Assembly (NCBI GenBank): GCA_950097015.1
Contig: CATNEN010000040.1
Location: 248,001 to 312,000 of the forward strand
Length of the DNA stretch: 64,000 nucleotides
Source of the DNA: Macrostomum hystrix
Taxonomy: Eukaryota; Animalia; Platyhelminthes
Direction: 5' to 3'
Translations under genes and position numbers: made by a program
Notes under the pieces: model-generated
Told to the model about the DNA's origin: nothing
Seen by the model: the letters and a program-made list of their open reading frames with translations, nothing else
The model's database searches: none
Shown here: piece after piece, positions 1 to 39,602 of the stretch
Layout of the letters: each line of letters opens with the position of its first letter
Numbering within the stretch: the first letter of the stretch is position 1

Positions 1-1040
1 CCCACTCCTCTCCAATCATTCAGATCCCACTCCTCTCCGATCACTCAGATCCCACTCCTCTCCGATCATTCAGATCCCACTCCTCTCCAATCATTCAGAT
101 CCCACTCCTCTCCGATCACTCAGATCCCACTCCTCTCCAATCACTCAGATCCCACTCCTCTCCAATGATTCAGATCCCACTCCTCTACAATCATTCAGAT
201 CCCACTCTTCTGCAATCACTCAGATCCCATTCCTCTCCGATCACTCAGATCCCACTCCTCTCCAATCACTCAGATCCCACTCCTCTCCAATCACTCAGAT
301 CCCACTCCTCTCCAATCACTCAGATCCCACTCCTCTCCAATCACTCAGATCCCACTCCTCTCCAATGATTCAGATCCCACTCCTCTCCAATCACTCAGAT
401 CCCACTCCTCTCCAATCACTCAGATCCCACTCCTCTCCAATGATTCAGATCCCACTCCTCTCCAATCACTCAGATCCCACTCCTCTCCAATCACTCAGAT
501 CCCACTCCTCTCCAATCACTCAGATCCCACTCCTCTCCATCATTCAGATCCCACTCCTCTCCAATCATTCAGATCCCACTCCTCTCCATCATTCAGATCC
601 CACTCCTCTCCAATCACTCAGATCCCACTCCTCTCCAATCACTCAGATCCCACTCCTCTCCAATCACTCAGATCCCACTCCTCTCCAATCACTCAGATCC
701 CACTCCTCTCCAATCACTCAGATCCCACTCCTCTCCAATGATTCAGATCCCACTCCTCTCCAATCACTCAGATCCCACTCCTCTCCAATCACTCAGATCC
801 CACTCCTCTCCAATCACTCAGATCCCACTCCTCTCCATCATTCAGATCCCACTCCTCTCCAATCATTCAGATCCCACTCCTCTCCATCATTCAGATCCCA
901 CTCCTCTCCAATCACTCAGATCCCACTCCTCTCCAATCACTCAGATCCCACTCCTCTCCAATCACTCAGATCCCACTCCTCTACAATCACTCAGATCCCA
1001 CTCCTCTCCAATCACTCAGATCCCACTCCTCTCCAATCAT
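1..1040. repeat. 25-bp minisatellite array (cagatcccactcctctccaatcact)n, runs off the left edge
   Basis: Unit read directly; about 41 near-identical copies. Confidence 0.97.
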
Positions 1041-2229
1041 CACTCCGAGGGGATTTAAAAGATTGTTAACTAGTAAATTGAGCAGAGCCCCAGCTAATTT
1101 CTAATCCCAGTTATGTCTAAATATGCCAGGTTGCAGCCCTCTGTCTTGCACAACACTCAATTTGTCACCCATCCCGTTTTTCACAGGTGTCACAAGCTGT
1201 GTGAAATCAGCTTTGTCAGTCTTTTAAAAATACTCTTTTTCCTAAATAAAGGAAAACAGAATTTTTCTACAAAAGTCTGACAGCACTCTGTGACAGTTAT
1301 ATGTGTTAACAGGCCTTGTCTGCTATCCAACTGTGGGAGTATTATGCAATCCTCCGGGATCAAAGCAAAAAAGCCATCCCTTCGAAATATCCCCATGTTC
1401 CGCTTGTTAAGTTTTACACATGTTCACGCAAGGCACACAACAACCTTATTTTGGAACAAGCTGTTGTGACGCAACGAAGGGGTAAAAATCCCTTTCCATT
1501 TTAATTTTTTAAACTTTACATGTGAGGATTTTAGTCAAAAGTGACACATTTTTTTAATTGGGACAAAGAACAAGTACCCTGGAGTTAGAAATGCGGAGTA
1601 AATTTGACGCATTGAAAAATAACTTAGAATTGCACATTCAGCTTGCGCCAATTAAAACAAATAATAAATCTTTAATATTTCCTCATATCGCTAAAATTTC
1701 ATAATCAACACATTATACTATAAGATAATAAAAATAATTCACCTACGAGTATGCCTAATGAATTTATTCTCAAACTAAACAATATACGATAGGGACAAGC
1801 AATGCTCAAAGTGTTTATGAGGCAGTGTTTATTATTATTATTACTATTGCATAATCATTGCACTACATTAAATACTAAACCAAATGATGATTAGCTTCTA
1901 TTATTTCACTTTTGGCTTATAGATTGGAGAACTAAGACCCTGTATTTGATTGTTTGGTGTTTACTAATGGCGAGCTATCTATAGTCTTGTTATTCAATTC
2001 ACAAATTTTGAAAGATTAGGCGCGTGCTTGCTTGAGAACACAGAATTTATATTTGGAGCTGAGGGACTTTCGTGAGATGTTTCTGATAGAATGGGAAAAG
2101 GAAGAAGACAGAGCGAGAAGGGATTATGATGCGATGAAAATAGGAGAGGGTGGGGATATGGGGATGGGAGTAGGAGAGGCTAGGAGAAAAGGGAGATGAG
2201 AATATGAGGCTGGGAGAATTGCGACATGG

Positions 2230-5200
2230 GAATAAGAGAGATGAAGACAATGGGAGAATAGGGACAAGGGAATAGGAGAGGCTCGGAGAATAGAGATGGG
2301 GGAATAGGAGAGGTTGGGAGAATAGAGACGTGGGAAGAGGAGAGGCTCGGAGAATAGGGACATGGGAAGAGGAGAGGCTCGGAGAATAGAGACATGGGAA
2401 GAGGAGAGGCTGGGAGAATTGAGACGGGGGAAGAGGAGAGGCTCGGAGAATAGGGACATGGGAAGAGGAGAGGCTGGGAGAATAGGGACATGGGAAGAGG
2501 AGAGGCTCGGAGAATAGGGACATGGGAAGAGGAGAGGCTCGGATAATAGGGACATGGGAAGAGGAGAGGCTCGGAGAATAGGGGCATGGGAATAGGAGAG
2601 GCTGGGAGAATTGAGACGGGGGAAGAGGAGAGGCTCGGAGAATAGGGACATGGGAAGAGGAGAGGTTGGGAGAATAGAGACGGGGGAATAGGAGAGGTTG
2701 GGAGAATAGAGACGGGGGAATAGGAGAGGCTGGGAGAATAGGGACATGGGAAGAGGAGAGGCTGGGAGAATAAGGACATGGGAAGAGGAGAGGCTCGGAG
2801 AATAGGGACATGGGAAGAGAAGAGGCTCGGAGAATAGAGACGGGGGAATAGGAGAGGCTAGGAGAATAGAGATGGGGGAATAGGAGAGGCTCGGAGAATA
2901 GAGATGGGGGAATAGGAGAGGCTCGGAGAATAGTGATGGGGGAAGAGGAGAGGCTCGGAGAATAGTGATGGGGGAATAGGAGAGGCTCGGAGAATAGTGA
3001 TGGGGGAAGAGGAGAGGCTCGGAGAATAGTGATGGGGGAAGAGGAGAGGCTCGGAGAATAGAGATGGGGGGATAGGAGAGGCTCGGAGAATAGAGACGGG
3101 GGAATAGGAGAGGTTGGGAGAATAGAGACGGGGGAATAGGAGAGGCTGGGAGAATAGGGACATGGGAAGAGGAGAGGCTGGGAGAATAAGGACATGGGAA
3201 GAGGAGAGGCTCGGAGAATAGGGACATGGGAAGAGAAGAGGCTCGGAGAATAGAGACGGGGGAATAGGAGAGGCTAGGAGAATAGAGATGGGGGAATAGG
3301 AGAGGCTCGGAGAATAGAGATGGGGGAATAGGAGAGGCTCGGAGAATAGTGATGGGGGAAGAGGAGAGGCTCGGAGAATAGTGATGGGGGAAGAGGAGAG
3401 GCTCGGAGAATAGTGATGGGGGAATAGGAGAGGCTCGGAGAATAGTGATGGGGGAAGAGGAGAGGCTCGGAGAATAGTGATGGGGGAATAGGAGAGGCTC
3501 GGAGAATAGTGATGGGGGAATAGGAGAGGCTCGGAGAATAGTGATGGGGGAATAGGAGAGGCTCGGAGAATAGTGATGGGGGAAGAGGAGAGGCTCGGAG
3601 AATAGTGATGGGGGAATAGGAGAGGCTCGGAGAATAGTGATGGGGGAATAGGAGAGGCTCGGAGAATAGTGATGGGGGAAGAGGAGAGGCTCGGAGAATA
3701 GAGATGGGGGGATAGGAGAGGCTCGGAGAATAGTGATGGGGGAATAGGAGAGGCTCGGAGAATAGAGATGGGGGAATAGGAGAGGCTGGGAGAATAGAGA
3801 CGTGGGAAGAGGAGAGGCTCGGAGAATAGGGACAAGGGAATAGGAGAGGCTGGGAGAATAGAGATGGGGGAATAGGTGAGGATCGGAGAATAGAGACGGG
3901 GGAATAGGAGAGGTTGGGAGAATAGAGACGGGGGAATAGGAGAGGCTGGGAGAATAGGGACATGGGAAGAGGAGAGGCTGGGAGAATAAGGACATGGGAA
4001 GAGGAGAGGCTCGGAGAATAGGGACATGGGAAGAGAAGAGGCTCGGAGAATAGAGACGGGGGAATAGGAGAGGCTAGGAGAATAGAGATGGGGGAATAGG
4101 AGAGGCTCGGAGAATAGAGATGGGGGAATAGGAGAGGCTCGGAGAATAGTGATGGGGGAAGAGGAGAGGCTCGGAGAATAGTGATGGGGGAATAGGAGAG
4201 GCTCGGAGAATAGTGATGGGGGAAGAGGAGAGGCTCGGAGAATAGTGATGGGGGAAGAGGAGAGGCTCGGAGAATAGAGATGGGGGGATAGGAGAGGCTC
4301 GGAGAATAGAGACGGGGGAATAGGAGAGGTTGGGAGAATAGAGACGGGGGAATAGGAGAGGCTGGGAGAATAGGGACATGGGAAGAGGAGAGGCTCGGAG
4401 AATAGGGACATGGGAAGAGGAGAGGCTCGGAGAATAGGGACATGGGAAGAGGAGAGGCTCGGAGAATAGAGACGGGGGAATAGGAGAGGCTGGGAGAATA
4501 GAGATGGGGAATAGGAGAGGCTCGGAGAATAGAGATGGGGGAATAGGAGAGGCTCGGAGAATAGTGATGGGGGAAGAGGAGAGGCTCGGAGAATAGTGAT
4601 GGGGGAAGAGGAGAGGCTCGGAGAATAGTGATGGGGGAATAGGAGAGGCTCGGAGAATAGTGATGGGGGAATAGGAGAGGCTCGGAGAATAGTGATGGGG
4701 GAATAGGAGAGGCTCGGAGAATAGTGATGGGGGAATAGGAGAGGCTCGGAGAATAGTGATGGGGGAATAGGAGAGGCTCGGAGAATAGTGATGGGGGAAG
4801 AGGAGAGGCTCGGAGAATAGTGATGGGGGAATAGGAGAGGCTCGGAGAATAGTGATGGGGGAATAGGAGAGGCTCGGAGAATAGTGATGGGGGAAGAGGA
4901 GAGGCTCGGAGAATAGAGATGGGGGGATAGGAGAGGCTCGGAGAATAGTGATGGGGGAATAGGAGAGGCTCGGAGAATAGAGATGGGGGAATAGGAGAGG
5001 CTGGGAGAATAGAGACGTGGGAAGAGGAGAGGCTCGGAGAATAGGGACAAGGGAATAGGAGAGGCTGGGAGAATAGAGATGGGGGAATAGGTGAGGATCG
5101 GAGAATAGAGACGGGGGAATAGGAGAGGCTGGGAGAATAGAGACGGGGGAGTAGGAGAGGCTGGGAGAATAGGGACATGGGAATGGAGAGGCTGGGAATA
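2230..5200. repeat. 32-bp purine-rich minisatellite (ggagaatagtgatgggggaataggagaggctc)n with variant blocks
   Basis: Unit read directly; the 32-aa periodicity of the spurious minus-strand ORFs equals 3 units. Confidence 0.96.
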
Positions 5201-27744: not shown

Positions 27745-28760
27745 CAGGAATGGAGAGAGATGGGAAGAGGAATGGAGAGAGATGGGAAGAGGAATGGAGA
27801 GAGATGGGAAGAGGAATGGAGAGAGATGGGAAGAGGAATAGAGAGAGATGGGAAGAGGAATAGAGAGAGATGGGAAGAGGAATGGAGAGAGATGGGAAGA
27901 GGAATGGAGAGAGATGGGAAGAGGAATGGAGAGAGATGGGAAGAGGAATGGAGAGAGATGGGACGAGGAATGGAGAGAGATGGGAAGAGGAGTGGAGAGA
28001 GATGGGAAGAGTAGTGGAGAGAGATTTGAAAAGAGGAATGGAGACAGATGGGAAGAGGAGTGGAGAGAGATGGGAAGAGGAGTGGAGAGAGATTTGAAAA
28101 GAGGAATGGAGAGAGATGGGAAGAGGAGTGGAGAGAGATTTGAAAAGAGGAATGGAGACAGATGGGAAGAGGAGTGGAGAGAGATTTGAAAAGAGGAATG
28201 GAGAGAGATGGGAAGAGGAGTGGAGAGAGATTTGAAAAGAGGAATGGAGAGAGATGGGAAGAGGAGTGGAGAGAGATTTGAAAAGAGGAATGGAGAGAGA
28301 TGGGAAGAGGAGTGGAGAGAGATGGGAAGAGGAGTGGAGAGAGATTTGAAAAGAGGAATGGAGAGAGATGGGAAGAGGAGTGGAGAGAGATTTGAAAAGA
28401 GGAATGGAGAGAGATGGGAAGAGGAATAGAGAGAGATGGGAAGAGGAATGGAGAGAGATGGGAAGAGGAATGGAGAGAGATGGGAAGAGGAATGGAGAGA
28501 GATGGGAAGAGGAATGGAGAGAGATGGGAAGAGGAGTGGAGAGAGATTTGAAAAGAGGAATGGAGAGAGATGGGAAGAGGAATGGAGAGAGATGGGAAGA
28601 GGAATGGAGAGAGATGGGAAGAGGAATGGAGAGAGATGGGAAGAGGAATGGAGAGAGATGGGAAGAGGAATGGAGAGAGATGGGAAGAGGAATGGAGAGA
28701 GATGGGAAGAGGAGTGGAGAGAGATTTGAAAAGAGGAATGGAGAGAGATGGGAAGAGGTA
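27745..28760. repeat. 22-bp GA-rich minisatellite (gggaagaggaatggagagagat)n
   Basis: Unit read directly. Confidence 0.95.
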
Positions 28761-29289
28761 ACTATGCAATTAAAAGAAAGTAATTGTAAATGCCATCCGT
28801 CACATGCGAAAAAAAATGGTTGAATAAAAAAATTAATGACTAACAAACTGATTGCTTTGAAAAAATGTTTATTTATGTTCGCACAGAAGAAAAAACAAGG
28901 AACACAACATCAGCGAATAAAACTGTCAGCTTTGAAATATGCAGATACTATAGACATGTGTAACTATGTCTAATATTATTGTCACTTCGGAAATCAGTTA
29001 AAACTCTCAATATACTACTAAACGTTACAAATTTGGCAACGGCAAAACCAAAGAATAGTAAAACGAATCAAAGAAAAGTACTTTTCTTGGAAGCCAACAT
29101 TGCAACAGCAGCGGACGCGCAGTTAAACAAGGCGACCAATTGTTCCTTAAGACAAAAGCAGACTGAAATAATGAAAGCAACAAAATAAAACAATGAGACG
29201 GATTTTCAATTTTACTATCAGCTAATTCTAGAATATTCCCATCCGAAACTAGAATTACATTAAAAGCTATAAAATCCCATTCGAAACTA

Positions 29290-29950
29290 TGATTCCAATC
29301 GATACTAGAATTCCAATCGATACTAGAATCCCAATCGATACTAGGATTCCAATCGATACTAGAATCCCAATCGATACTAGAATCGCAATCGATACTAGAA
29401 TCCCAATCGATACTAGAATCCCAATCGATAATAGAATCCCAATCGATACTAAAATCCTAATCGATACTAGAATTCCAATCGATACTAAAATCCTAATCGA
29501 TACTAGAATTCCAATCGATGCTAAAATCCTAATCGATACTAGAATTCCAATCGATACTAGAATCCTAATCGATACTAGAATCCCAATCGATACTAGAATT
29601 CCAATCGATACTAGAATCGCAATCGATACTAGAATCGCAATCGATACTAGAATCCCAATCGAAACTAGAATCCCAATCGAAACTAGAATCGCAATCGATA
29701 CTAGAATCCCAATCGAAACTAGAATCCCAATCAAAACTAGAATCCCAATCAAAACTAGAATCCAAATCGAAACTAGAACCCCAATAAAAACTAGAATCCC
29801 AATAAAAACTAGAATCCCAAATAAAACTAGAATCCCAATCGAAACTATAACCCCAATCGAAACTGGAATCCCAATAAAAACTAGAATCCTAATCAAAACT
29901 AGAATCCCAATCGACAATAATCTTAATCAAAGCTTTAATCCCAATCGAAA
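29290..29950. repeat. 18-bp minisatellite (atcgatactagaatccca)n
   Basis: Unit read directly; begins just 3' of the TIR-SLOG gene stop. Confidence 0.95.
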
Positions 29951-29991
29951 CTAGTAGAGTTCCTAATCCCAGATCGCATTAGCAGAGGAGG

Positions 29992-32900
29992 TCAGGTGGA
30001 GCCCCTCAGGCGGCACAGGTAGCCGGTCCTCTGCTGGTCTGCCGCGCGCTTCTCGTAGGAGCGCAGGCTGTGAATGATTCGAATGACATTGGCCACCAGG
30101 TGCTCGGCCGTGTAGTTGGTGCAGTCAAGCGGCACTCCAAGCTTGCTCCAGAGGCGCTGGCTAACACCGGGTGGCACCTGGGATTGGATTGGCGGCGATC
30201 GAAACATGGCCATTTAAGAAAACGCTCCATAGACTACTTACGTAAGTAGTTTTAGAATGTACGACATTTCAGCCTAGGAATAATAATATTATTATTATAA
30301 CTGCAGGAGGGCTGCGGGCAATGGCACATCATTTGCTGACACTAGACCTGCAGCCAGCGAGGAGGCAATTCTGCCCATTCCGCTGTCTCCTCAGCACCCA
30401 CACACACAGACACTGTAAGCAGGTACACACTCACACAGTGTGTACATCTGCCCTGACTTTCTCATCGTCTGGCAGTGTACACGACAAGCCCCCAAGCCTT
30501 CTCTCCGCTGCTGCGCCACAAATGAATGTGGCCTCGCCGCGGAATCGAGCTCAGGCACCTTGGTGTGAGAGGCAAACGCGTCAATGGCTCTGAAACTCAC
30601 CCCATCTAGCCGAGGAAATTGCCCAAAGTTTTGAATCAGGTATCGTAGAATTATAGCGCGAAAATTTAACATTTTTTTTACAGAAAATGTGCTTGAAAAA
30701 TGAATTTCAAGCCAGTTAAGAGAATTCGTGTCCGATGTCTGCGGACTGTGGAGGTCGTTATGCCAGTTAATACCTCGAATCGCCTCTCGCCCTCGCTATA
30801 GTAGCTGGCAGCAGCGCCCCCGAGGCACTTCAGCGGCAGCACAACCTTGTCGTGCCACATGAACTGGTCGGCCTCCTCGGCTGACTTGGCTCCGCCCTCA
30901 ATCAGCAGGCAGAGGCTGCAGGCCCTAGCAGCGATTTGCACCTTCTCAACAGGCGTATCGCCGCACACCAGCGTCTTGCCGAATGCCGGTGGCCCAATCG
31001 AAGAATTTGACGTTGTCGCGGAAGTCGACGACGATGTTGAGTCGTCGGCCGACATAGCGACTCCGGAGGGGGACGATTTAACCGCACCTGGCGCGCTGTC
31101 GTGCAACAGGTGCCAGGTGTCCTCGGGCAGGCCCAGCCGGCGCCGCGTCTCGCTGAACTGCCTGGAGACAATCTGGTCGGCGCCAGGACCGCCGCCGGTG
31201 ACTAGGCCGATCCAGTCAAGCTGCGCCAGGGCCTCGCCTAGCACCTTGCAGACGGCATCGGTGCAGCGATTGCCCAGCCGCTTGCTGCGGCACACATAGA
31301 TTAGCCATTTGTTAACTGGCAGCTGGGACTTGACTAGCTGGGCCAGCTTGTCGATGCGAAAGTCCAACGCTTTGCTCTTGTGCATGTACGCCATGGTGTT
31401 GGGATCGAAGATGGTCTCCAGGTGTCTGGCCACCTTCTCTGGCCAGCCGGACTGCTCAGAGCTCTGTGGCGCGGGGATGATGTGTGGGGGATAATTTGAT
31501 TGTAATAATTGTAATAATTTCATCCTCACGGTGGTGTACATCCGCCTTGAATTTCTTATGGTCAGGCAGTGTAGCCTCACCATGGGGATTTCTAAGCCAT
31601 GGGATCAAGAGGATTTCTTAAGCTATGTGATCAAGAGGATTTCATAAGCCATGGGATCAAAGGGATTTCTTAAGCCATAGGATCAAAGGGATTTCTTAAG
31701 CTATAGGATCAAGAGGATTTCTCAAGCCCCGGGATCAAAAGGATTTCTTGAACTTGGGGTCAAGAGGATTTCTTAAGCCTGAGGATCAAAAGGATTTCTT
31801 AAGCCTGAGGATCTAGAGGATTTCTTAATTCTTAGGGTTGATTGTTCCAAAACAAAAGACGATAAATCGTATTTTACTTTTAACAGAATACACAAGAACC
31901 TGAACTCACGATAGCATTGTTGCCCTCCAGCAGCATCTTGAGCCACATGGGCAGCTGGACATTGCCGCACAGCACAGGAATGATGTGCTTGCGCTGCTCG
32001 CAGTAGAATATCTGCCAGTTGGTGGGTTCGGTTCGGCAAGGTAAGATGCTTATGCGAGCTGCAAGAACTAAACTGATTGATCATTAGCATGATCAAGGGG
32101 AGGGGCTGCAGATCACTGAAGAGTCGGAGGGGAGTGGCTGCAGATCACTGAAGAGTCGGAGGGGAGTGGCTGCAGATCACTGAAGAGTCGGTGGGGAGTG
32201 GCTGCAGATCACTGAAGAGTCGGAGGGGAGTGGCTGCAGATCACTGAAGAGTCGGAGGGGAGTGGCTGCAGATCACTGAAGAGTCGGAGGGGAGTGGCTG
32301 CAGATCACTGAAGAGTCAGGGGTGAGAGGCTGCAGCCCACTGAAGATTGTCTTGCTGCATCAATCGATGCGCAGGGAAGGCCACCTGCTGTACGCACGTG
32401 ATTCCGTGAGCTCTTTGACGTAAGGAAGCTGTCGGACACGATGAAGACGGCGGCACCAGCTGAGTCGGCCTTGGCCTGAAAGTCCAGCAGGCCTTCGCGT
32501 GACTCATCGCAGCCCTGCTCGGTGGAAGAGTAGGAGCAGGCGTCCAGCTCGTCGCCAAGGATCAGCGTTTCCCGGGAGCCGAGGCCTGGACGGCGAAAGC
32601 AAATAGAATCATGAGCTCTGAAGCTCAGCAAAACTTACTAAAAGACGTTCCCTAAAGCAATTATTTAGTAATCGAACAAACTCACGCCGCAGGCCCACAA
32701 TGCTGCCCTGACTGTTGGCTTGGTCTCCGGTCGCGGCGGCATCCGAAGCTGCTATCTCCTGTGACATGCCGCCGCCGCAGCCAACCTCCGCGGAGCCTCG
32801 GATCGAGCCGCTGATGACAACCATCGAGACTTTGAAGCCGCGACTTGAGAGAGCAGTCCGCAGCAGGTCGGCCTTTGTCCAGTCGTCCGCGTGGTGACTG

Positions 32901-35900
32901 ACAACAACCTGGCGATTGCTCATCAGCGCCTTGTACACAGCCTCATCTTCGTCTAAAGACGCCTGTACTGTGAGCAGAGTCTGCTGCTGATGCAGCTGTT
33001 GTAAGGACCGCCTTCTGTGCTGTTGCGGTAGCTGCTGAGGCGGCTGTAGCAGAATTTGCTGCTGCTGGTCATGCAGCATTGGCGTCTGCTCCGGATAATT
33101 TATCAGATCCATCTCTCTGCAAATTGGAATTCATTTGAGTGCATTCTACTCAACGCCGAAGATTCGAACTCGAAACCTTAACCGAATTGATCTAACAGAA
33201 AATTAAACAAAGTAAGAAATTAATTAGCTCACTTGGATTGGCGGAATTTGATCGACTTGCGCGACATAATCGACAGGAAGGTCGGCTTTCGCTTGAAGCT
33301 CTGAGAAGAGGTGGGGATGAGAATGAGGCTTTTATAATACTATCTATGTAGTAGTCTGGCTATCTGGTGTCGTTTTTCTAGATGATGTGCCACTCTATAA
33401 TAATAACGATAACAATAACATTGTGGGTAATAGCTGCAGGTAATGGCGCATCATTTGCTGACACTAAACCTGCAGCCAGCGAGGAGCCAATTCTGCCCAC
33501 TCCTGAGCACAAACGCACACGGATACCGTAAGCAGGCGCTCACTCACACTAGGCGTGTTTAGTTGCCCTGACTTTCTCATCGTCAGGCAGTGTACACTTT
33601 CACTGTGCCTTGGAGGTAGGCCCTAAAGGGCGTAAATTGCACGACAAGCCCACAAGCCTTCTCTCCGCGGCTGCGCCGCAAATGAATGTGGCCTCGCCGA
33701 AGAATCGAACTCAGGGACCTTGGTGCGAGAAGAAAACGCGTTTACCGCACTGCCACTCGCCCCCCAATGTGTCACTCTACTAGATAATGTGCCACTCAAT
33801 TTCTAGATAATGTGCTACTCAATCACTAGATACTCAAACCATAGCTACTCAAGCCCGCACAGCGCAGAACTCACCGGCGGTCCAACAGGCGCCTCGTCTG
33901 GCAGCGAATCCAGCGGCTTCCGCTTGCTGGCATCGAACTGTCGCCTGATCTCTTCGGCCACCCGACCAGCTTCCTCGTTGATGTTGGACGACTCGATGTC
34001 GTCTAGTGAGTTGATTTAAGGGTGGTACAGTTTTGATGTTTAGCTGACTGTGGCCTAGTTACTCAATATAGACTCATTTAGAAATACCTACTGACGGAAT
34101 AGAACTGACCGAACTAGACCTACTGACAGGGAATAGAACTGACCGAACTGGACCTACTGACAGGGAATAGAGCTGACCGAACTAGACCTACTGACAGAGA
34201 ATAGAACTGACCGAACTGGACCTACTGACTGGGAATAGAACTGACCAAACTAGACCTACTGACAGAGAATAGAACTGACCGAACTAGACCTACTGACAGG
34301 GAATAGAGCTGACCGAACTAGACCTACTGACAGGGAATAGAACTGACCGAACTGGACCTACTGACAGGGAATAGAACTGACCGAACTAGACCTACTGACA
34401 GGGAATAGAGCTGACCGAACTAGACCTACTGACAAGGAATAGAACTGACCGAACTGGACCTACTGACAGGGAATAGAACTGACCGAACTGGACCTACTGA
34501 CAGGGAATAGAGCTGACCGAACTGGACCTACTGACAGGGAATAGAACTGACCGAACTGGACCTACTGACAGGGAATAGAACTGACCGAACTGGACCTACT
34601 GACAGGGAATAGAACTGACCGAACTGGACTTACTGACATGGAATAGAACTGACCGAACTGGACCTACTGACAGGGAATAGAACTGACCGAACTGGACCTA
34701 CTGACAGGGAATAGAACTGACCGAACTGGACCTACTGACAGGGAATAGAGCTGACCGAACTAGACCTACTGACGGGGAATAGAACTGACTGAACTATTAA
34801 AAGGCTGGTACAAGAACAACAGACAATAATGCAAGTCAAAGAGAAAGTAGCTTTCGATTGTTGCTTTCGATTGCAAGCCATGAGAGAAGCGAATGGGAAA
34901 ATGAACCACAAGCCGCAATTTAAACAAATGCAACACTTAGATCACTAATAGCTTTTGTGTTCTAATTGCATTGCACACTCAAGTGTACTCTGAGCACCTT
35001 GCAAGTTGCGATAAGCTGTTTTCAGGCCAGGCTGGCAAGCGCTTAAATCCTAAGCCATGTATGCACGAGTGCTCGCTAATTATACCAGTTAACTAAAGTA
35101 GGTCAGAGCAAAATGCAGCCTATCTGCTAGTGATAATTGACGTGTTGATCCGAGAGTCAAACAAGATCAAGCGTGAAAATTTGGCATGTGCAGCTGCTAT
35201 ATGCTTATTGTATTAGAGTTGACAGCTAAATACAATGACACATCAGCTACGAGTAGCTGCAGCTAGTCCATTTACTCCGACTCTTCAGTGATCTGCAGCC
35301 ACTCCCCTCCGACTCTTCAGTGATCTGCAGCCACTCCCCTCCGACTCTTCAGTGATCTGCAGCCACTCCCCTCCGACTCTTCAGTGATCTGCAGCCACTC
35401 CCTCCGACTCTTCAGTGATCTGCAGCCACTCCCCACCGACTCTTCAGTGATCTGCAGCCTCTCCCCTCCGACTCTTCAGTGATCTGCAGCCACTCCCCTC
35501 CGACTCTTCAGTGATCTGCAGCCACTCCCCTCCGACTCTTCAGTGATCTGCAGCCACTCCCCTCCGACTCTTCAGTGATCTGCAGCCACTCCCCACCGAC
35601 TCTTCAGTGATCTGCAGCCTCTCCCCTCCGACTCTTCAGTGATCTGCAGCCACTCCCCTCCGACTCTTCAGTGATCTGCAGCCACTCCCCTCCGACTCTT
35701 CAGTGATCTGCAGCCACTCCCCTCCGACTCTTCAGTGATCTGCAGCCACTCCCCTCCGACTCTTCAGTGATCTGCAGCCACTCCCCACCGACTCTTCAGT
35801 GATCTGCAGCCTCTCCCCTCCGACTCTTCAGTGATCTGCAGCCACTCCCCACCGACTCTTCAGTGATCTGCAGCCACTCCCCTATGACTCTTCAGTGATC

Positions 35901-38103
35901 TGCAGCCACTCCCCTCCGACTCTTCAGTGATCTGCAGCCTCTCCCCTCCGACTCTTCAGTGATCTGCAGTCACTCCCCACCGACTCTTTAGTGATCTGCA
36001 GCCTCTCCCCTCCGACTCTTCAGTGATCTGCAGCCACTCCCCACCGACTCTTCAGTGATCTGCAGCCACTCCCCTCCGACTCTTCAGTGATCTGCAGACA
36101 CTCCCCTCCGACTCTTCAGTGATCTGCAGGCACTCCCCTCCGACTATTCAGTGATCTGCAGCCACTCCCCTCCGACTCTTCAGTGATCTGCAGTCACTCC
36201 CCTCCGACTCTTCAGTGATCTGCAGTCACTCCCCTCCGACTATTCAGTGATCTGCAGCCACTCCCCTCCGACTCTTCAGTGATCTGCAGTCACTCCCCTC
36301 CGACTCTTCAGTGATCTGCAGGCACTCCCCTCCGACTATTCAGTGATTTGCAGCCACTCCCCTCCGACTCTTCAGTGATCTGCAGCCACTCCCCTCCGAC
36401 TCTTCAGTGATCTGCAGCCACTACCCACCGACTCTTCAGTGAGCTTCAGCCACTCCCCACCGACTCTTCAGTGATCTGCAGACACTCCCCACCGACTCTT
36501 CAGTGAGCTTCAGCCACTCCCCACCGACTCTTCAGTGGGCGTCATCACTTACAGGCCCCAGTCCAGGGGACGAACTGAGTAGTGGCGAACTGAATAGCCA
36601 AACACCTGGGCGGCCAATCCGAAATGAAGCTGATTGGCAGAATCTCCTTGCCCAGCACGTCCGCCAGCTTCACTTCCCTATTGGTCCACTGGGTAGCGCC
36701 GTAGCGCGGCGTGACCAGCGGTATGAAGATTTCAGTGGACGCAACTGCGTCGTTCAGGGCATCCTGCCAGTCGGAGCCGAGGGCGATTTCGTCGACGTCC
36801 TGGAAGATGCGCAAATTTCGGCAATGTTTCTTAGCACACACTACGAGTATTTAGCATATTTTAAAAGCCAGGCGTGTTCCTAACACTGCCCTCTCCATCC
36901 TATTCTCTTTTTCTACCCCACTCTCTCTCCATCCCACTCACCAAAAACACTGAGCAGCCAAGAGATGTGAGCTTCTCCTTGAGCACAACCGCCACGTGAG
37001 CAGCCTCAGCCCTGACGTAGCTAATGAGCATGTCCTTGGCGGCTGAACGGCCAGTGTGGCGGCCCTGCAGTAGGTCAACATCTCCTAGAAGCTGATCATG
37101 GTGACGCTTACTACCAGTTGCTGATAGCTGCTGGCCTCCCAGAGCTGCTGAACTGTGCGGCGGCACTGTTATTGGCTGCGTTGAGCAGAGCAGCGGCGAC
37201 GGAGGCGGCTGCGGGGGCCGATGTCTCAACGACGGGATCAGGGCTGAAGACAAGGATGGAGAAGCTGTTGCTGCTGCCGCCGCCGCTGCTGGCGCTGCCA
37301 CCGCAGCCGGGGTTATAGGAACGCCAACTGTTGTGGCGGAGGCGACGTCCTCTGCGGAGTTGGCTCCGGCGAGTTGTCGCACGTCAGCCTGCGCAATGAA
37401 AAAATAGGCCACGCATTGCCATCACTTGTACATACTCGTAACTTGACGCCTAAGGTACGAGAATGTGAACTGACCTGTAATCTAGCCAGTGCTGTGACGG
37501 CCACACTCCGCCTGTGATCGAGCACGTCATGAATTCGCAGCCTTGGTTCGTACAGTCCACTTACCGGCCAGCCGCGCCTATTCAGAAATAGGAACTCGCA
37601 GCCAGCCAGAAGGGGCAGGAAGATGCTGGCCCGTTTGCGCAGTTGTTCCAGTGTTTCCCTGGGCGACGCGTCAATAAAGCCGACGGCCAGCTCTTCGCCA
37701 GTGCTGGTCGAAGTCAATACAATGCCTATCTCCAGGCTGTCACATGCTGGAGTAAATTTGTATTTTTTGCAAGTAAAAAATGCTGAATTGAGTCTAAATG
37801 AAAATCCCTACCGATATTGTCGCCGTCTCCGATGATAAATACAGAATTAGTGCTGCGCAGCACGCAGTTAAAGGCCAGACAGTTCTCCAAATCGAGTGGG
37901 ACCAGTTCGCCTGAAAGGGATCGAAACCGGTGCTCGGGAAGAAAGTATTTTGCTTTGGTGAGCAGGAAGCTGCGCAGCTGAGCCAGAGTCTTCACTGAAG
38001 CCGGATGCAGCAATAGTAATTCGCTTTGCAATATGCACGGCCCGTCGCCTGCGAAATACTTTAAGCTGACCGCAGACATAGCGGACATGGCACCGTGTTT
38101 CAT
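29992..38103 (-). CDS. Multidomain TIR-TIR-SLOG protein (~1016 aa, 11 exons) with two N-terminal ubiquitin-like-fold candidates
   Basis: Exons 38103-37812, 37746-37475, 37388-36942, 36799-36553, 34002-33875, 33300-33233, 33116-32686, 32585-32398, 32011-31910, 31463-30774, 30177-29992 join with GT-AG sites into 3051 nt with no frameshift. TIR1: DMLISYVRAE..SVFLDVDEIALGSDWQDALNDAV..FIPLVTPRYGATQWTNREVKLA..KEILPI. TIR2: VVVSHHADD..AVFIVSDSFLTSKSSRNHIFYC..KHIIPV. SLOG: LVTGGGPGADQ..LLIEGGAKSAEEA..VLPL..LGGAA. Confidence 0.85.
30279..30604 (-). mobile_element. SINE family A, copy 2 (internally deleted), in the last intron of the TIR-SLOG gene
   Basis: Reverse complement of copies 1 and 4; lacks the ~40-bp segment between tgtacac and gacaagc. 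Confidence 0.85.
31585..31830. repeat. ~26-bp minisatellite (ggatttcttaagccatgggatcaaga)n
   Basis: Read directly; intronic, next to a short SINE A fragment at ~31525-31580. Confidence 0.85.
32098..32345 (-). repeat. 32-bp minisatellite family Y, short inverted array (ggggagtggctgcagatcactgaagagtcgga)n
   Basis: Exact reverse complement of the unit at 35275-36535. Confidence 0.96.
33397..33765 (-). mobile_element. SINE family A, copy 3, with probable 13-bp TSD (atgtgycactcta)
   Basis: Full-length reverse complement. atgtgccactcta flanks the tail side and atgtgtcactcta the head side. Confidence 0.85.
34085..34790. repeat. 34-bp minisatellite (gaatagaactgaccgaactggacctactgacagg)n
   Basis: Unit read directly; in intron 4 of the TIR-SLOG gene. 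Confidence 0.96.
35275..36535 (+). repeat. 32-bp minisatellite family Y, long array (ctccgactcttcagtgatctgcagccactccc)n
   Basis: Unit read directly; about 39 copies. Confidence 0.97.
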
Positions 38104-39602
38104 GGCTACTTCGCGGTCCTTCGGTTTGTGCCGCTTTTGCGTGCTTGGCCAGTGCTCATTGCCACTTCATAGACTGTCCCCTTAAAATTAGGAGGGGTGG
38201 GGTGGTGGGTGGCCTGAGGAGAGGGAGGCCCAAGACTGCTAAATCAAATGTTCTATTTTAAACATCAACCCTCATACGATCGATAGCGAATGACCAATTA
38301 GTGGAGGTTGGGGTGGCGGTCCGTGTACACTGGGTGAAAAGGGCGGAAAAGTGACCGTAGGGAAAGACAGACTGATTGTGCACGAGAGAAATCTTTTGGC
38401 GCAGGGGACCTGTTTTAAGTTTTAACTTTTAGAAAGCACGAGACACCGGGCTGATGCCCATGGTCTGTATATATAAACGAACGTGAAGTAGATTTATGAT
38501 TGTAAATTTGCTGCTGCTAAGACATTTTTGCGATGTAGACTTCCTAAATCCTAACTTTGTTTCTAGTCTTAATCGTCGTAAAGTTAAACCAAAGAAGCGC
38601 CAATTTTACGTGTAACATGAAAGGGTGTTATAAATACAAATTGTATAAAGAATAAATATTATTCGTTCTTACTTAGCTCGTATTTTGCAATTGGGTTTGT
38701 TTGTACTCGGAAATCGAATCGCATCAAATACTCGTACTAACTTTTTTCAACTTATAAAAACTGCAATTTGACAAACTATCAATAAACAAACCCGTTTAAG
38801 ATGACAATTGACAGACAACACAAACGAAGCGTTGTTCAGTCAAATGCGCTTTGATAAAAGAAAAAAATTCTAAAAGCGTCAGTGATTCCATTTTCTCCTT
38901 TAATACAAAATAAACAACTTTAGGTGAATGTGTCTTCCATTGTTTTTTTCGCTTTAGTCTAGCCTACAGATTGAACTATTCAACTAGTATTGTATAATTA
39001 TATAAAGTGAAGATCGGAGAAAAAAATCGGACGAACACTCGAACAGGCGGTTGTCTGTTTTTTAAACAGCGTAAGCGGCAACGTGATGCCTTAGCCATAG
39101 GCCCATAGCCTTAGCTGTTTATTTTTCTGGCGTCAATTTACATAGATGCGTACTGACAGTAGGTTGGTGCAAAATGGAATAGAAAAATATAATTGTAAAA
39201 ACGATCTATCATCAGTAATCGTAAAAGAAAAGGTAAAAGAGGATTAACAAATCTCAAAACTGAAACATGTCAATCAATCGACTCCTCTACTCCGAATAAA
39301 ATGGATAATATTGCAACGGATGCACAACGAAATTATATTAAAAAATCCACAGTGAAAAATACTATGTGCATTCCCTCGTCCATAAAAAGTATAAATCATA
39401 ATTGTATATAAATGATAAATTGCTCATACATGCCAGTTTAGAATCTAAGAAAATGCAGCCCTATAAATCCTATGCATATGGAATCTTAGAAGCTCATCTA
39501 TTAGCTGCAAGCGTATGTACATTTAAAAGCATGCAAAATACTGCCACTCATTTTCTTTGTTTTAAGCCACAGTTTTCTTGCAATACTACGTATTAGTAGT
39601 AA

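Follow-up and report, generated by a model that had tools for sequence, protein, structure and literature searches.

TIR and SLOG domains in known systems

Signals of the ADP-ribose (ADPR) type that are made by TIR domains and recognised by dedicated receptors are established in bacteria, in the form of Thoeris, and in plants. In the Thoeris protein ThsA a SLOG domain gates a SIR2 domain, and in SARM1 an ARM domain gates the TIR domain. SLOG itself was reportedly defined by Burroughs et al. in 2015. For animals, the first accounts of enzymatic TIR signalling are, to our knowledge, very recent, and we know of no receptor for its product. It is in this context that we describe a gene of the flatworm Macrostomum hystrix, found in a 64,000-nucleotide stretch of contig CATNEN010000040.1 (positions 248,001 to 312,000; hereafter the window, in whose own numbering all positions are given). 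One spliced mRNA of this gene encodes two ubiquitin-like (Ubl) domains, two TIR domains (TIR1 and TIR2) and, at the C-terminal end, a SLOG domain, in the order Ubl-Ubl-TIR1-TIR2-SLOG. Our reading of the whole, to which we would assign a probability of roughly 0.55, is that of a soluble intracellular protein with TIR1 as its output, TIR2 as a partner and SLOG as a nucleotide-binding gate. The architecture is already known, since TIR(Glu)-TIR(His)-SLOG proteins are catalogued in a 2026 preprint (10.64898/2026.04.20.719644), and the gene is a member of an ancient and functionally open family.

Type I Thoeris and the window protein both pair a TIR domain that converts NAD+ to a cyclic ADPR with a SLOG fold, the activity being assigned by homology in the case of the window protein. 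They differ, however, in several respects. Thoeris is divided between two genes, for the TIR protein ThsB and the SIR2-SLOG protein ThsA, whereas the window protein is a single polypeptide; the SLOG domain of its family is of the LDcluster4 rather than the STALD type, matches to STALD being secondary; the TIR domain of its orthologue from Patiria makes canonical cyclic ADPR (cADPR) and not 3'cADPR; and a dead second TIR domain and N-terminal ubiquitin-like domains have been added. Moreover, Pfam finds neither a SIR2 domain nor any other effector domain in it, and because of this the protein is not considered a member of Thoeris. An earlier note on this DNA, made from the letters alone, had proposed a Thoeris-like writer and reader in one chain; the protein falls short of a full Thoeris counterpart, as no SIR2, Macro, transmembrane (TM) or SLATT effector domain is present in the window protein, which was scanned as separate exons, or in 44 homologues, on which Pfam gives only TIR and SLOG families. 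Neither is there any TM-like segment in the window protein (maximum KD19 1.54).

SARM1 is likewise an intracellular animal TIR NADase that is able to make cADPR, a capacity that the window protein is expected by homology to share, and the two may share a design in which a regulatory domain that binds nucleotides is attached to a catalytic TIR domain. Unlike SARM1, the window protein contains two TIR domains, its putative regulator is the C-terminal SLOG domain, and no Pfam match to an ARM or SAM domain is found in the pieces of the window protein or in the 44 homologues.

One transcript for two TIR domains and a SLOG domain

The coding region is divided into 11 exons (Table 1), between which all introns are of the GT-AG type and over which the reading frame is unbroken. 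The RNA evidence consists of transcriptome contigs from four public runs (X1 to X4), placed on window positions 29950-34050. Within this stretch, spliced contigs of runs X2 to X4 contain all the joints from exon 5 to exon 11, at 33875|33300 (exons 5/6), 33233|33116 (6/7), 32685|32584 (7/8), 32398|32011 (8/9), 31910|31463 (9/10) and 30772|30175 (10/11). The joint between exons 4 and 5 is supported by a loose contig end at 34002, which is the reverse complement of the final 30 bases of exon 4. A contig of run X3 (2553 nt) links the 3' untranslated region (UTR) to exons 11 to 5 and to 662 nt of sequence upstream of these, and one of run X4 (2905 nt) extends from exon 10 past exon 5 and 1302 nt further upstream, an upstream part that exceeds the total length of exons 1 to 4 by 65 nt. 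The presence of TIR and SLOG exons in single spliced contigs shows that they belong to one mRNA, as the earlier note had supposed.

The 11-exon gene with two TIR domains followed by a SLOG domain is in this way confirmed, by the GT-AG model, the RNA, the family profiles and the fold, with the correction of one splice junction. The initial choice of GT and AG sites for the joint between exons 8 and 9 (32385|32058) was rejected in favour of that read by the RNA contigs; with this joint moved, the length of about 1016 amino acids (aa) first given for the protein, which was close, becomes 1009 aa. The interpretation that had been built on the observation is partly supported. The junctions between exons 1 and 2, 2 and 3, and 3 and 4 are placed by their GT-AG sites, reading frame and homology, and lie outside the RNA-covered stretch. 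For exon 2 a shorter form, with its donor after RRGWP at ~37571, was rejected on homology, and the longer form was chosen because relatives retain the residues E, L and D that follow GWP.

An enzyme-type TIR1 and a degenerate TIR2

TIR1 is, by its sequence, an enzyme-type TIR domain with the catalytic glutamate. Exon 4 alone matches Pfam TIR_2 (E 3e-9), and the TIR1 hidden Markov model (HMM) of the family matches the window protein with an E of 2e-59. Conservation in the family was counted in an alignment of 155 members, in which the catalytic glutamate (Glu372 here, in the motif WTNRE) is kept in 151. The model of TIR1 of a homologue, P0002, is closest to TIR domains that are NADases, namely those of SPARTA (Z 16.1) and SARM1 (Z 15.8, 24% identity), and also AbTir and RUN1; the best PADLOC match of the homologue TIR1 is ThsB (E 4e-11).

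Over 112 aa, TIR1 of the window furthermore has 66% identity with the TIR domain of Patiria miniata A0A914B4U3. This protein (857 aa, TIR at 254-417, catalytic residue 327) has an active TIR domain, which had produced cADPR after 4 h of over-expression in E. coli (10.64898/2026.04.20.719644, Table S4). Its product is canonical cADPR only, and the activity of the assayed animal TIR domains, including that of Patiria, is dependent on the glutamate and lost in the Glu mutant (10.64898/2026.04.20.719644). The ‘writer’ half of the earlier proposal, that is, the synthesis of an NAD-derived messenger by TIR1, is therefore supported for the window protein by homology.

TIR2 gives no Pfam match on the separate exons of the window, and its identification rests on Pfam matches of homologues, hhalign and the secondary structure of a model. 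The family TIR2 HMM matches aa 547-716 of the window protein (E 1.7e-29); when the TIR2 regions of 20 homologues are scanned alone, all 20 match Pfam TIR_2 (best E 1e-10); hhalign places TIR2 in register with TIR1 (E 3e-4); and in an AlphaFold2 model of a homologue the TIR2 part follows a beta-alpha-beta-alpha-beta-alpha-beta-alpha pattern. In the fold search with the full-length homologue TIR2 never appears as a separate range, the TIR chains aligning best to TIR1. At the site of the catalytic glutamate the TIR2 domains of the family carry Gln in 138, His in six, as in the window (His684), and Glu in four of the 155 members. In contrast, the FYCExRK motif is almost invariant, with R691 present in every member and Y687 and E689 in 151-154; the window copy carries Y687, C688, E689, R691 and K692. 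Because this motif is kept while the catalytic glutamate is replaced, TIR2 is a conserved pseudo-enzyme and not a decaying duplicate.

The C-terminal SLOG domain and the N-terminal repeats

The modelled C-terminal domain has the SLOG nucleotide-binding fold. An AlphaFold2 model of exon 10 of the window, built on 46 sequences, has a predicted local distance difference test score (pLDDT) of 84.7 and a predicted template modelling score (pTM) of 0.78. With this model the 40 best Foldseek rows from the PDB are all from the SLOG superfamily (PpnN, YgdH, DprA, the Moco carrier protein and LOG), and the 41st is ShosA, which we take to have the SLOG fold also. Alignments of the model by VIA-align give Z-scores of 16.8 for the Moco carrier protein, 13.9 for LOG, 13.5 for PpnN, 12.5 for DprA, 11.3 for the MHR1/2 region of TRPM2 (an LSDAT_euk SLOG with ADPR-type ligands) and 10.3-10.9 for ThsA, including the complex of its SLOG domain with 3'cADPR (7UXS). 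For the complete SLOG domain of homologue P0002 the values are 16.2-16.4, over ~170 residues, against BcThsA with 3'cADPR, and 17.2 against PpnN. In other words, the predicted domain superimposes on all three classes, ThsA, LOG and TRPM MHR1/2, with which the earlier note had suggested a comparison, and it shares with them a Rossmannoid fold.

The motifs LVTGGGPG (aa 805-812) and IEGG.KSAEEA, by which the domain was first recognised, are both present, the former with T807, G809 and G812 conserved in 142-147 of the 155 members and the latter with E907, G908 and E915 conserved in 127-145. The family profile aligns the IEGGAKSAEEA motif to VLEGGPGTLHTI of TRPM2 MHR1/2, the EGGPG-type motif falling on VLEGGPGTLH, and in the matched structures ADPR occupies the TRPM2 site; the window protein differs from TRPM2 in having neither a channel nor a Nudix module. 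Likeness to the LOG motifs is partial (GGGPG and EGGAKSAEE against GGGxGxMG and PGGxGTxxE), and a PDB sequence search with the exon aligns the GGGPG loop to GGGPG of the LOG-like TT1465 (E 0.36). Against PDB sequences the family SLOG profile finds LOG and TRPM2 at a marginal E of ~0.1, with a one-residue offset at the catalytic Arg of LOG, where the window has Lys.

Homologues give clearer assignments. An exhaustive HMMER search with the SLOG exon returned 120 relatives, mostly of 750-1050 aa and with the domain at the C-terminus. Among the 44 of these that were scanned by Pfam, 43 have TIR_2, 32 have LDcluster4 (best E 3e-9) and 12 have STALD (best E 5e-5); the LDcluster4 score of P0002 is 26.9 bits, against a cut-off of 26.3. 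Those ESM-atlas neighbours that have a Pfam family all belong to SLOG families, STALD first. PADLOC finds no match with the SLOG exon of the window; with the SLOG domain of a homologue it finds the STALD domain of ThsA over the whole domain (E 4.6e-4). Because direct sequence searches with the window exon are marginal, the assignment to SLOG rests on the fold and on the Pfam matches of the homologues.

Relatives of bacterial or prokaryote type in LDcluster4 (P0062, P0068, P0085, P0088 and P0094) have the domain at the head of multidomain proteins with pentapeptide repeats, GUN4 and a response-regulator receiver domain, and this position in signalling proteins fits a sensor role. One of them, P0068, has an additional N-terminal Macro domain; its Macro-SLOG-receiver architecture hints at the sensing of ADPR-type molecules feeding a phosphorelay.

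At the other end of the protein, the two tandem repeats match no Pfam family. The family N-terminal HMM matches aa 38-174 of the window protein (E 3.7e-16), and the AlphaFold2 model of full-length P0002 (overall pLDDT 77) has at its N-terminus two beta-beta-alpha-beta...beta units with a pLDDT of ~90. Every language-model neighbour of the repeats belongs to a ubiquitin-like family, but none scores as high as 0.85, and they are to be taken as leads only.

An ancient family of animal proteins

More than 200 animal relatives are found, from sponges and placozoans to echinoderms and hemichordates. They include sponges (Oscarella, Corticium), Trichoplax, four classes of molluscs, annelids, nemerteans, a priapulid, chelicerates and tardigrades. 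Vertebrates, insects, nematodes and cnidarians are not represented among the 120 best rows, which is not proof of their absence. The homologues whose existence the earlier note had allowed for are thus numerous, and nearly all are annotated as ‘uncharacterized’ or ‘TIR domain-containing’. Similarity of the window protein to the family is collinear over the N-terminal repeats, TIR1, TIR2 and SLOG; the BLASTP high-scoring segment pairs cover aa 29-425 and 521-987 (E 1e-43 to 1e-54), and overall identity to the members compared is 30-35%.

In the 2026 preprint SLOG is among the domains drawn in Figure 3A (10.64898/2026.04.20.719644). Table S2 of the same work lists the Macrostomum lignano protein A0A267GNU3, with TIR domains at 287-421 (Glu360) and 523-725 (His671) and SLOG at 757-955, and two tardigrade TIR-SLOG proteins, Hypsibius exemplaris A0A9X6NDW2 and Ramazzottius A0A1D1V4B3, for which Glu is likewise given as the catalytic residue (10.64898/2026.04.20.719644). 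The first of the tardigrade proteins was independently recovered here, as match P0073. The M. lignano protein has the same domain order as that of the window, and the rare His of TIR2 is found in both, the corresponding coordinates (Glu360 and His671 there, Glu372 and His684 here) being offset by 12-13 residues. In those parts of the preprint that were available, only isolated TIR domains are tested and the role of SLOG in animals is not discussed (10.64898/2026.04.20.719644). [quoted passage not shown]

Given that the family is large, ancient and already catalogued, and that Pfam has precomputed TIR_2 and LDcluster4 on many of its members, the novelty that had been ascribed to the architecture was overestimated.

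Proposed function and its alternatives

The reading that we prefer may be set out as follows. TIR1 would be the catalytic output, either making a signal or consuming NAD+. TIR2 would have no catalytic part but would contribute, as a partner, to the TIR-TIR interface required by the active site. The SLOG domain would bind a small molecule, in the form of an ADPR-type nucleotide, would oligomerise and would thereby gate TIR1, in parallel with ThsA, in which SLOG gates SIR2, and SARM1, in which ARM gates TIR. The ligand might be the product of the protein itself, acting in feedback, or another nucleotide, and the pocket of the window copy may be altered. SLOG is seen as a nucleotide-binding regulator because of the fold matches to ThsA and TRPM2, the PADLOC matches to ThsB and to the STALD domain of ThsA, and the signalling context of LDcluster4 in bacteria.

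Several observations weigh against this reading. The Pfam matches of the window SLOG exon are below threshold, the best being YAcAr and LDcluster4 at E values of 0.03-0.07, and among the structures that match the domain best, enzymes (PpnN, LOG) are as frequent as sensors. In alignment, an Arg and a Glu that the family conserves fall near the catalytic motifs of LOG, with an uncertainty of about one residue. The assay of the Patiria TIR domain used the isolated domain, over-expressed in E. coli, and not the complete protein in cells of an animal. Moreover, the SLOG domain of the window is itself unusual: it keeps the Gly-rich loop (TGG..G), His836, the EGG...E motif (E915), Trp921 and Pro928, but departs from the rest of the family at four near-invariant positions (G777R, D871N, F874I and R892K, at which G, D, F and R are found in 136-154 of the 155 members), and its low-complexity Ser/Thr-rich insert sits in the loop that bears the family motif RQNxDGTF. 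Because of the four substitutions and the insert, ligand binding by this copy may be changed or weakened. On sequence grounds the window protein is nevertheless a divergent member of the family and not an outsider.

A stricter form of nucleotide signalling would be a switch in which writer and reader are one chain, as a counterpart of Thoeris: TIR1 would make cADPR or an ADPR isomer akin to it, which would bind to SLOG in its own or an adjacent molecule and, by positive feedback, drive cooperative assembly and a switch-like cleavage of NAD+ or burst of messenger, with TIR2 as the partner interface. TIR and SLOG are indeed fused and conserved together in more than 150 animals, with both the active site of TIR1 and the motifs of SLOG under constraint; among bacterial defence profiles TIR1 is nearest to ThsB and SLOG to ThsA; the orthologue TIR domain produces cADPR; the homologue SLOG superimposes on that of ThsA with 3'cADPR bound; and in one bacterial relative LDcluster4 is joined to Macro, a domain that binds ADPR. 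However, SLOG domains of the LDcluster4 type have no known ligand, the isomer read by ThsA is 3'cADPR where the orthologue TIR made canonical cADPR only, and the pocket residues of the window copy diverge from those of the family. A sensor fused to its own source would, moreover, be constantly exposed to the product unless the TIR domain were held off, and no input domain for this purpose has been identified. We therefore regard this switch as rather unlikely, and the step on which it turns, the sensing by SLOG of the protein's own TIR1 product, is pure inference. If it were true, it would mean that the logic of TIR to SLOG is a heritage common to bacteria and to early animals, beginning with sponges and placozoans, and that vertebrates lost it later.

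Alternatively, SLOG could itself be an enzyme, an N-glycosidase (phosphoribohydrolase) like LOG or PpnN, so that the protein would process nucleotides in two steps, for example by degrading or converting the TIR product, or by freeing the base from AMP or NAD-derived nucleotides. The high rank of PpnN and LOG among the structural matches is consistent with this, as are the family Arg (141 of 155 members), which aligns to within about one residue of the MHxRK segment of LOG, and the Glu of EGG....E (127 of 155), which corresponds to that of PGGxGTxxE. It has also been proposed that SLOG domains may act as sensors of ADPR derivatives and may in addition split 1' N-glycosidic bonds (PMC9503650). 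Yet the equivalence of residues with LOG is uncertain, given the HMMER E of 0.1 and the offset, and in the window copy Lys stands in place of the conserved Arg; the families nearest in sequence, LDcluster4 and STALD, are not known enzymes, and the bacterial LDcluster4 relatives resemble sensor modules of signalling proteins in their layout. An enzymatic SLOG domain appears to us, on balance, distinctly unlikely.

That the protein is a non-enzymatic adaptor, with both TIR domains as a scaffold in a pathway of the Toll/MyD88 type and SLOG in a structural or oligomerising part without a nucleotide role, would agree with the adaptor or regulator hypothesis cited for ecTIR-DC proteins and with a TIR2 that has lost its catalytic glutamate while retaining an invariant surface motif suited to interaction, but is very improbable because the glutamate of TIR1 is conserved and the orthologue TIR domain is enzymatically active, and the nucleotide-binding loops of SLOG are conserved also.

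To return to the gated TIR protein that we favour, the family couples a TIR domain of active type to the fold with which ThsA recognises 3'cADPR and TRPM2 recognises ADPR. Because of this coupling and of its broad conservation in animals, it is the most direct place in which to seek an animal receptor for a TIR product, or a metabolic gate like that of SARM1 but assembled from other parts. For such work the architecture is already catalogued and the SLOG domain of the window is an atypical copy, such that an orthologue closer to the consensus, from a mollusc or an echinoderm, would be the better biochemical subject.

Positions of the features and minor observations

Table 1. Features of the Ubl-Ubl-TIR1-TIR2-SLOG gene, in window coordinates
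Feature	Position	Protein (aa)	Strand	Remarks
Whole coding region	29992..38103		(-)	11 exons; coding sequence 3030 nt; protein 1009 aa; stop codon 29994-29992
Two ubiquitin-like (beta-grasp-like) tandem repeats	37475..38103	~20-181	(-)	Exons 1-2; each ends in a GWP....E-type motif
TIR1	36553..37040	298-412	(-)	End of exon 3 and exon 4, intron 3 inside; predicted active NADase/cyclase domain
Glu372 codon GAA	36674..36676	372	(-)	In QWTNREV; catalytic-glutamate position of TIR NADases
TIR2	31910..32914	~546-718	(-)	Exons 7-9; degenerate TIR; FYCExRK motif; disordered Gly/Ser/Ala-rich insert
His684 codon CAC	32398..32400	684	(-)	Last codon of exon 8; site of the catalytic Glu in active TIRs, from in-register alignments
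SLOG domain	30052..31397	~741-990	(-)	Exon 10 and most of exon 11; Ser/Thr-rich low-complexity insert at aa ~841-875
GGGPG glycine-rich loop	31182..31196	808-812	(-)	After second strand; family consensus TGGFxG
IEGGAKSAEEA motif	30870..30902	906-916	(-)	Family consensus IEGGPGAAHEAEEF
Exon 1	38103-37812		(-)	GT-AG model
Exon 2	37725-37475		(-)	GT-AG model
Exon 3	37388-36942		(-)	GT-AG model
Exon 4	36799-36553		(-)	GT-AG model
Exon 5	34002-33875		(-)	GT-AG model and RNA
Exon 6	33300-33233		(-)	GT-AG model and RNA
Exon 7	33116-32686		(-)	GT-AG model and RNA
Exon 8	32585-32398		(-)	GT-AG model and RNA
Exon 9	32011-31910		(-)	GT-AG model and RNA
Exon 10	31463-30774		(-)	GT-AG model and RNA
Exon 11	30177-29992		(-)	GT-AG model and RNA

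A short upstream open reading frame (ATG AAG TGG CAA TGA, at 38155-38169) lies about 50 nt 5' of the start codon, in the probable 5' UTR. Among the transcripts, a low-depth contig of run X4 (30644-30801) is unspliced across the donor of exon 10 into intron 10, which points to some intron retention or pre-mRNA. Run X1, which carries the label of another organism, has a 258-nt spliced contig of exons 9 and 10 (31318-32011) with 0 differences from the window; this is either the same species under a different label or a mixed sample.

Minisatellites occupy most of intron 4 and more than half of introns 8 and 9. A 32-bp unit is found in both intron 4 (35275-36537, 39.5 copies) and intron 8 (32096-32346, 7.8 copies), in opposite orientations, the two arrays flanking exons 5 to 8. 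These arrays could pair in the pre-mRNA; among the RNA joints listed there is no skip or back-splice between exons 4 and 9, the RNA-covered stretch excluding the array of intron 4. Intron 4 also contains a 34-bp unit (34086-34795, 20.9 copies) and intron 9 a 26-bp unit (31586-31828, 9.4 copies). A short way 3' of the stop codon there is an 18-bp unit (29273-29914, 35.7 copies), and further downstream of the gene a 22-bp unit (28500-28758, 11.6 copies).

Two copies of a repeat with a tRNA-like head, resembling a short interspersed nuclear element (SINE), lie in introns 10 (30300-30640) and 5 (33560-33790). RNA contigs on these copies reach depths of 1000-3700, as against 8-14 on the exons, and have many chimeric loose ends, from which it is evident that the SINE-like repeat is abundant, transcribed and dispersed.

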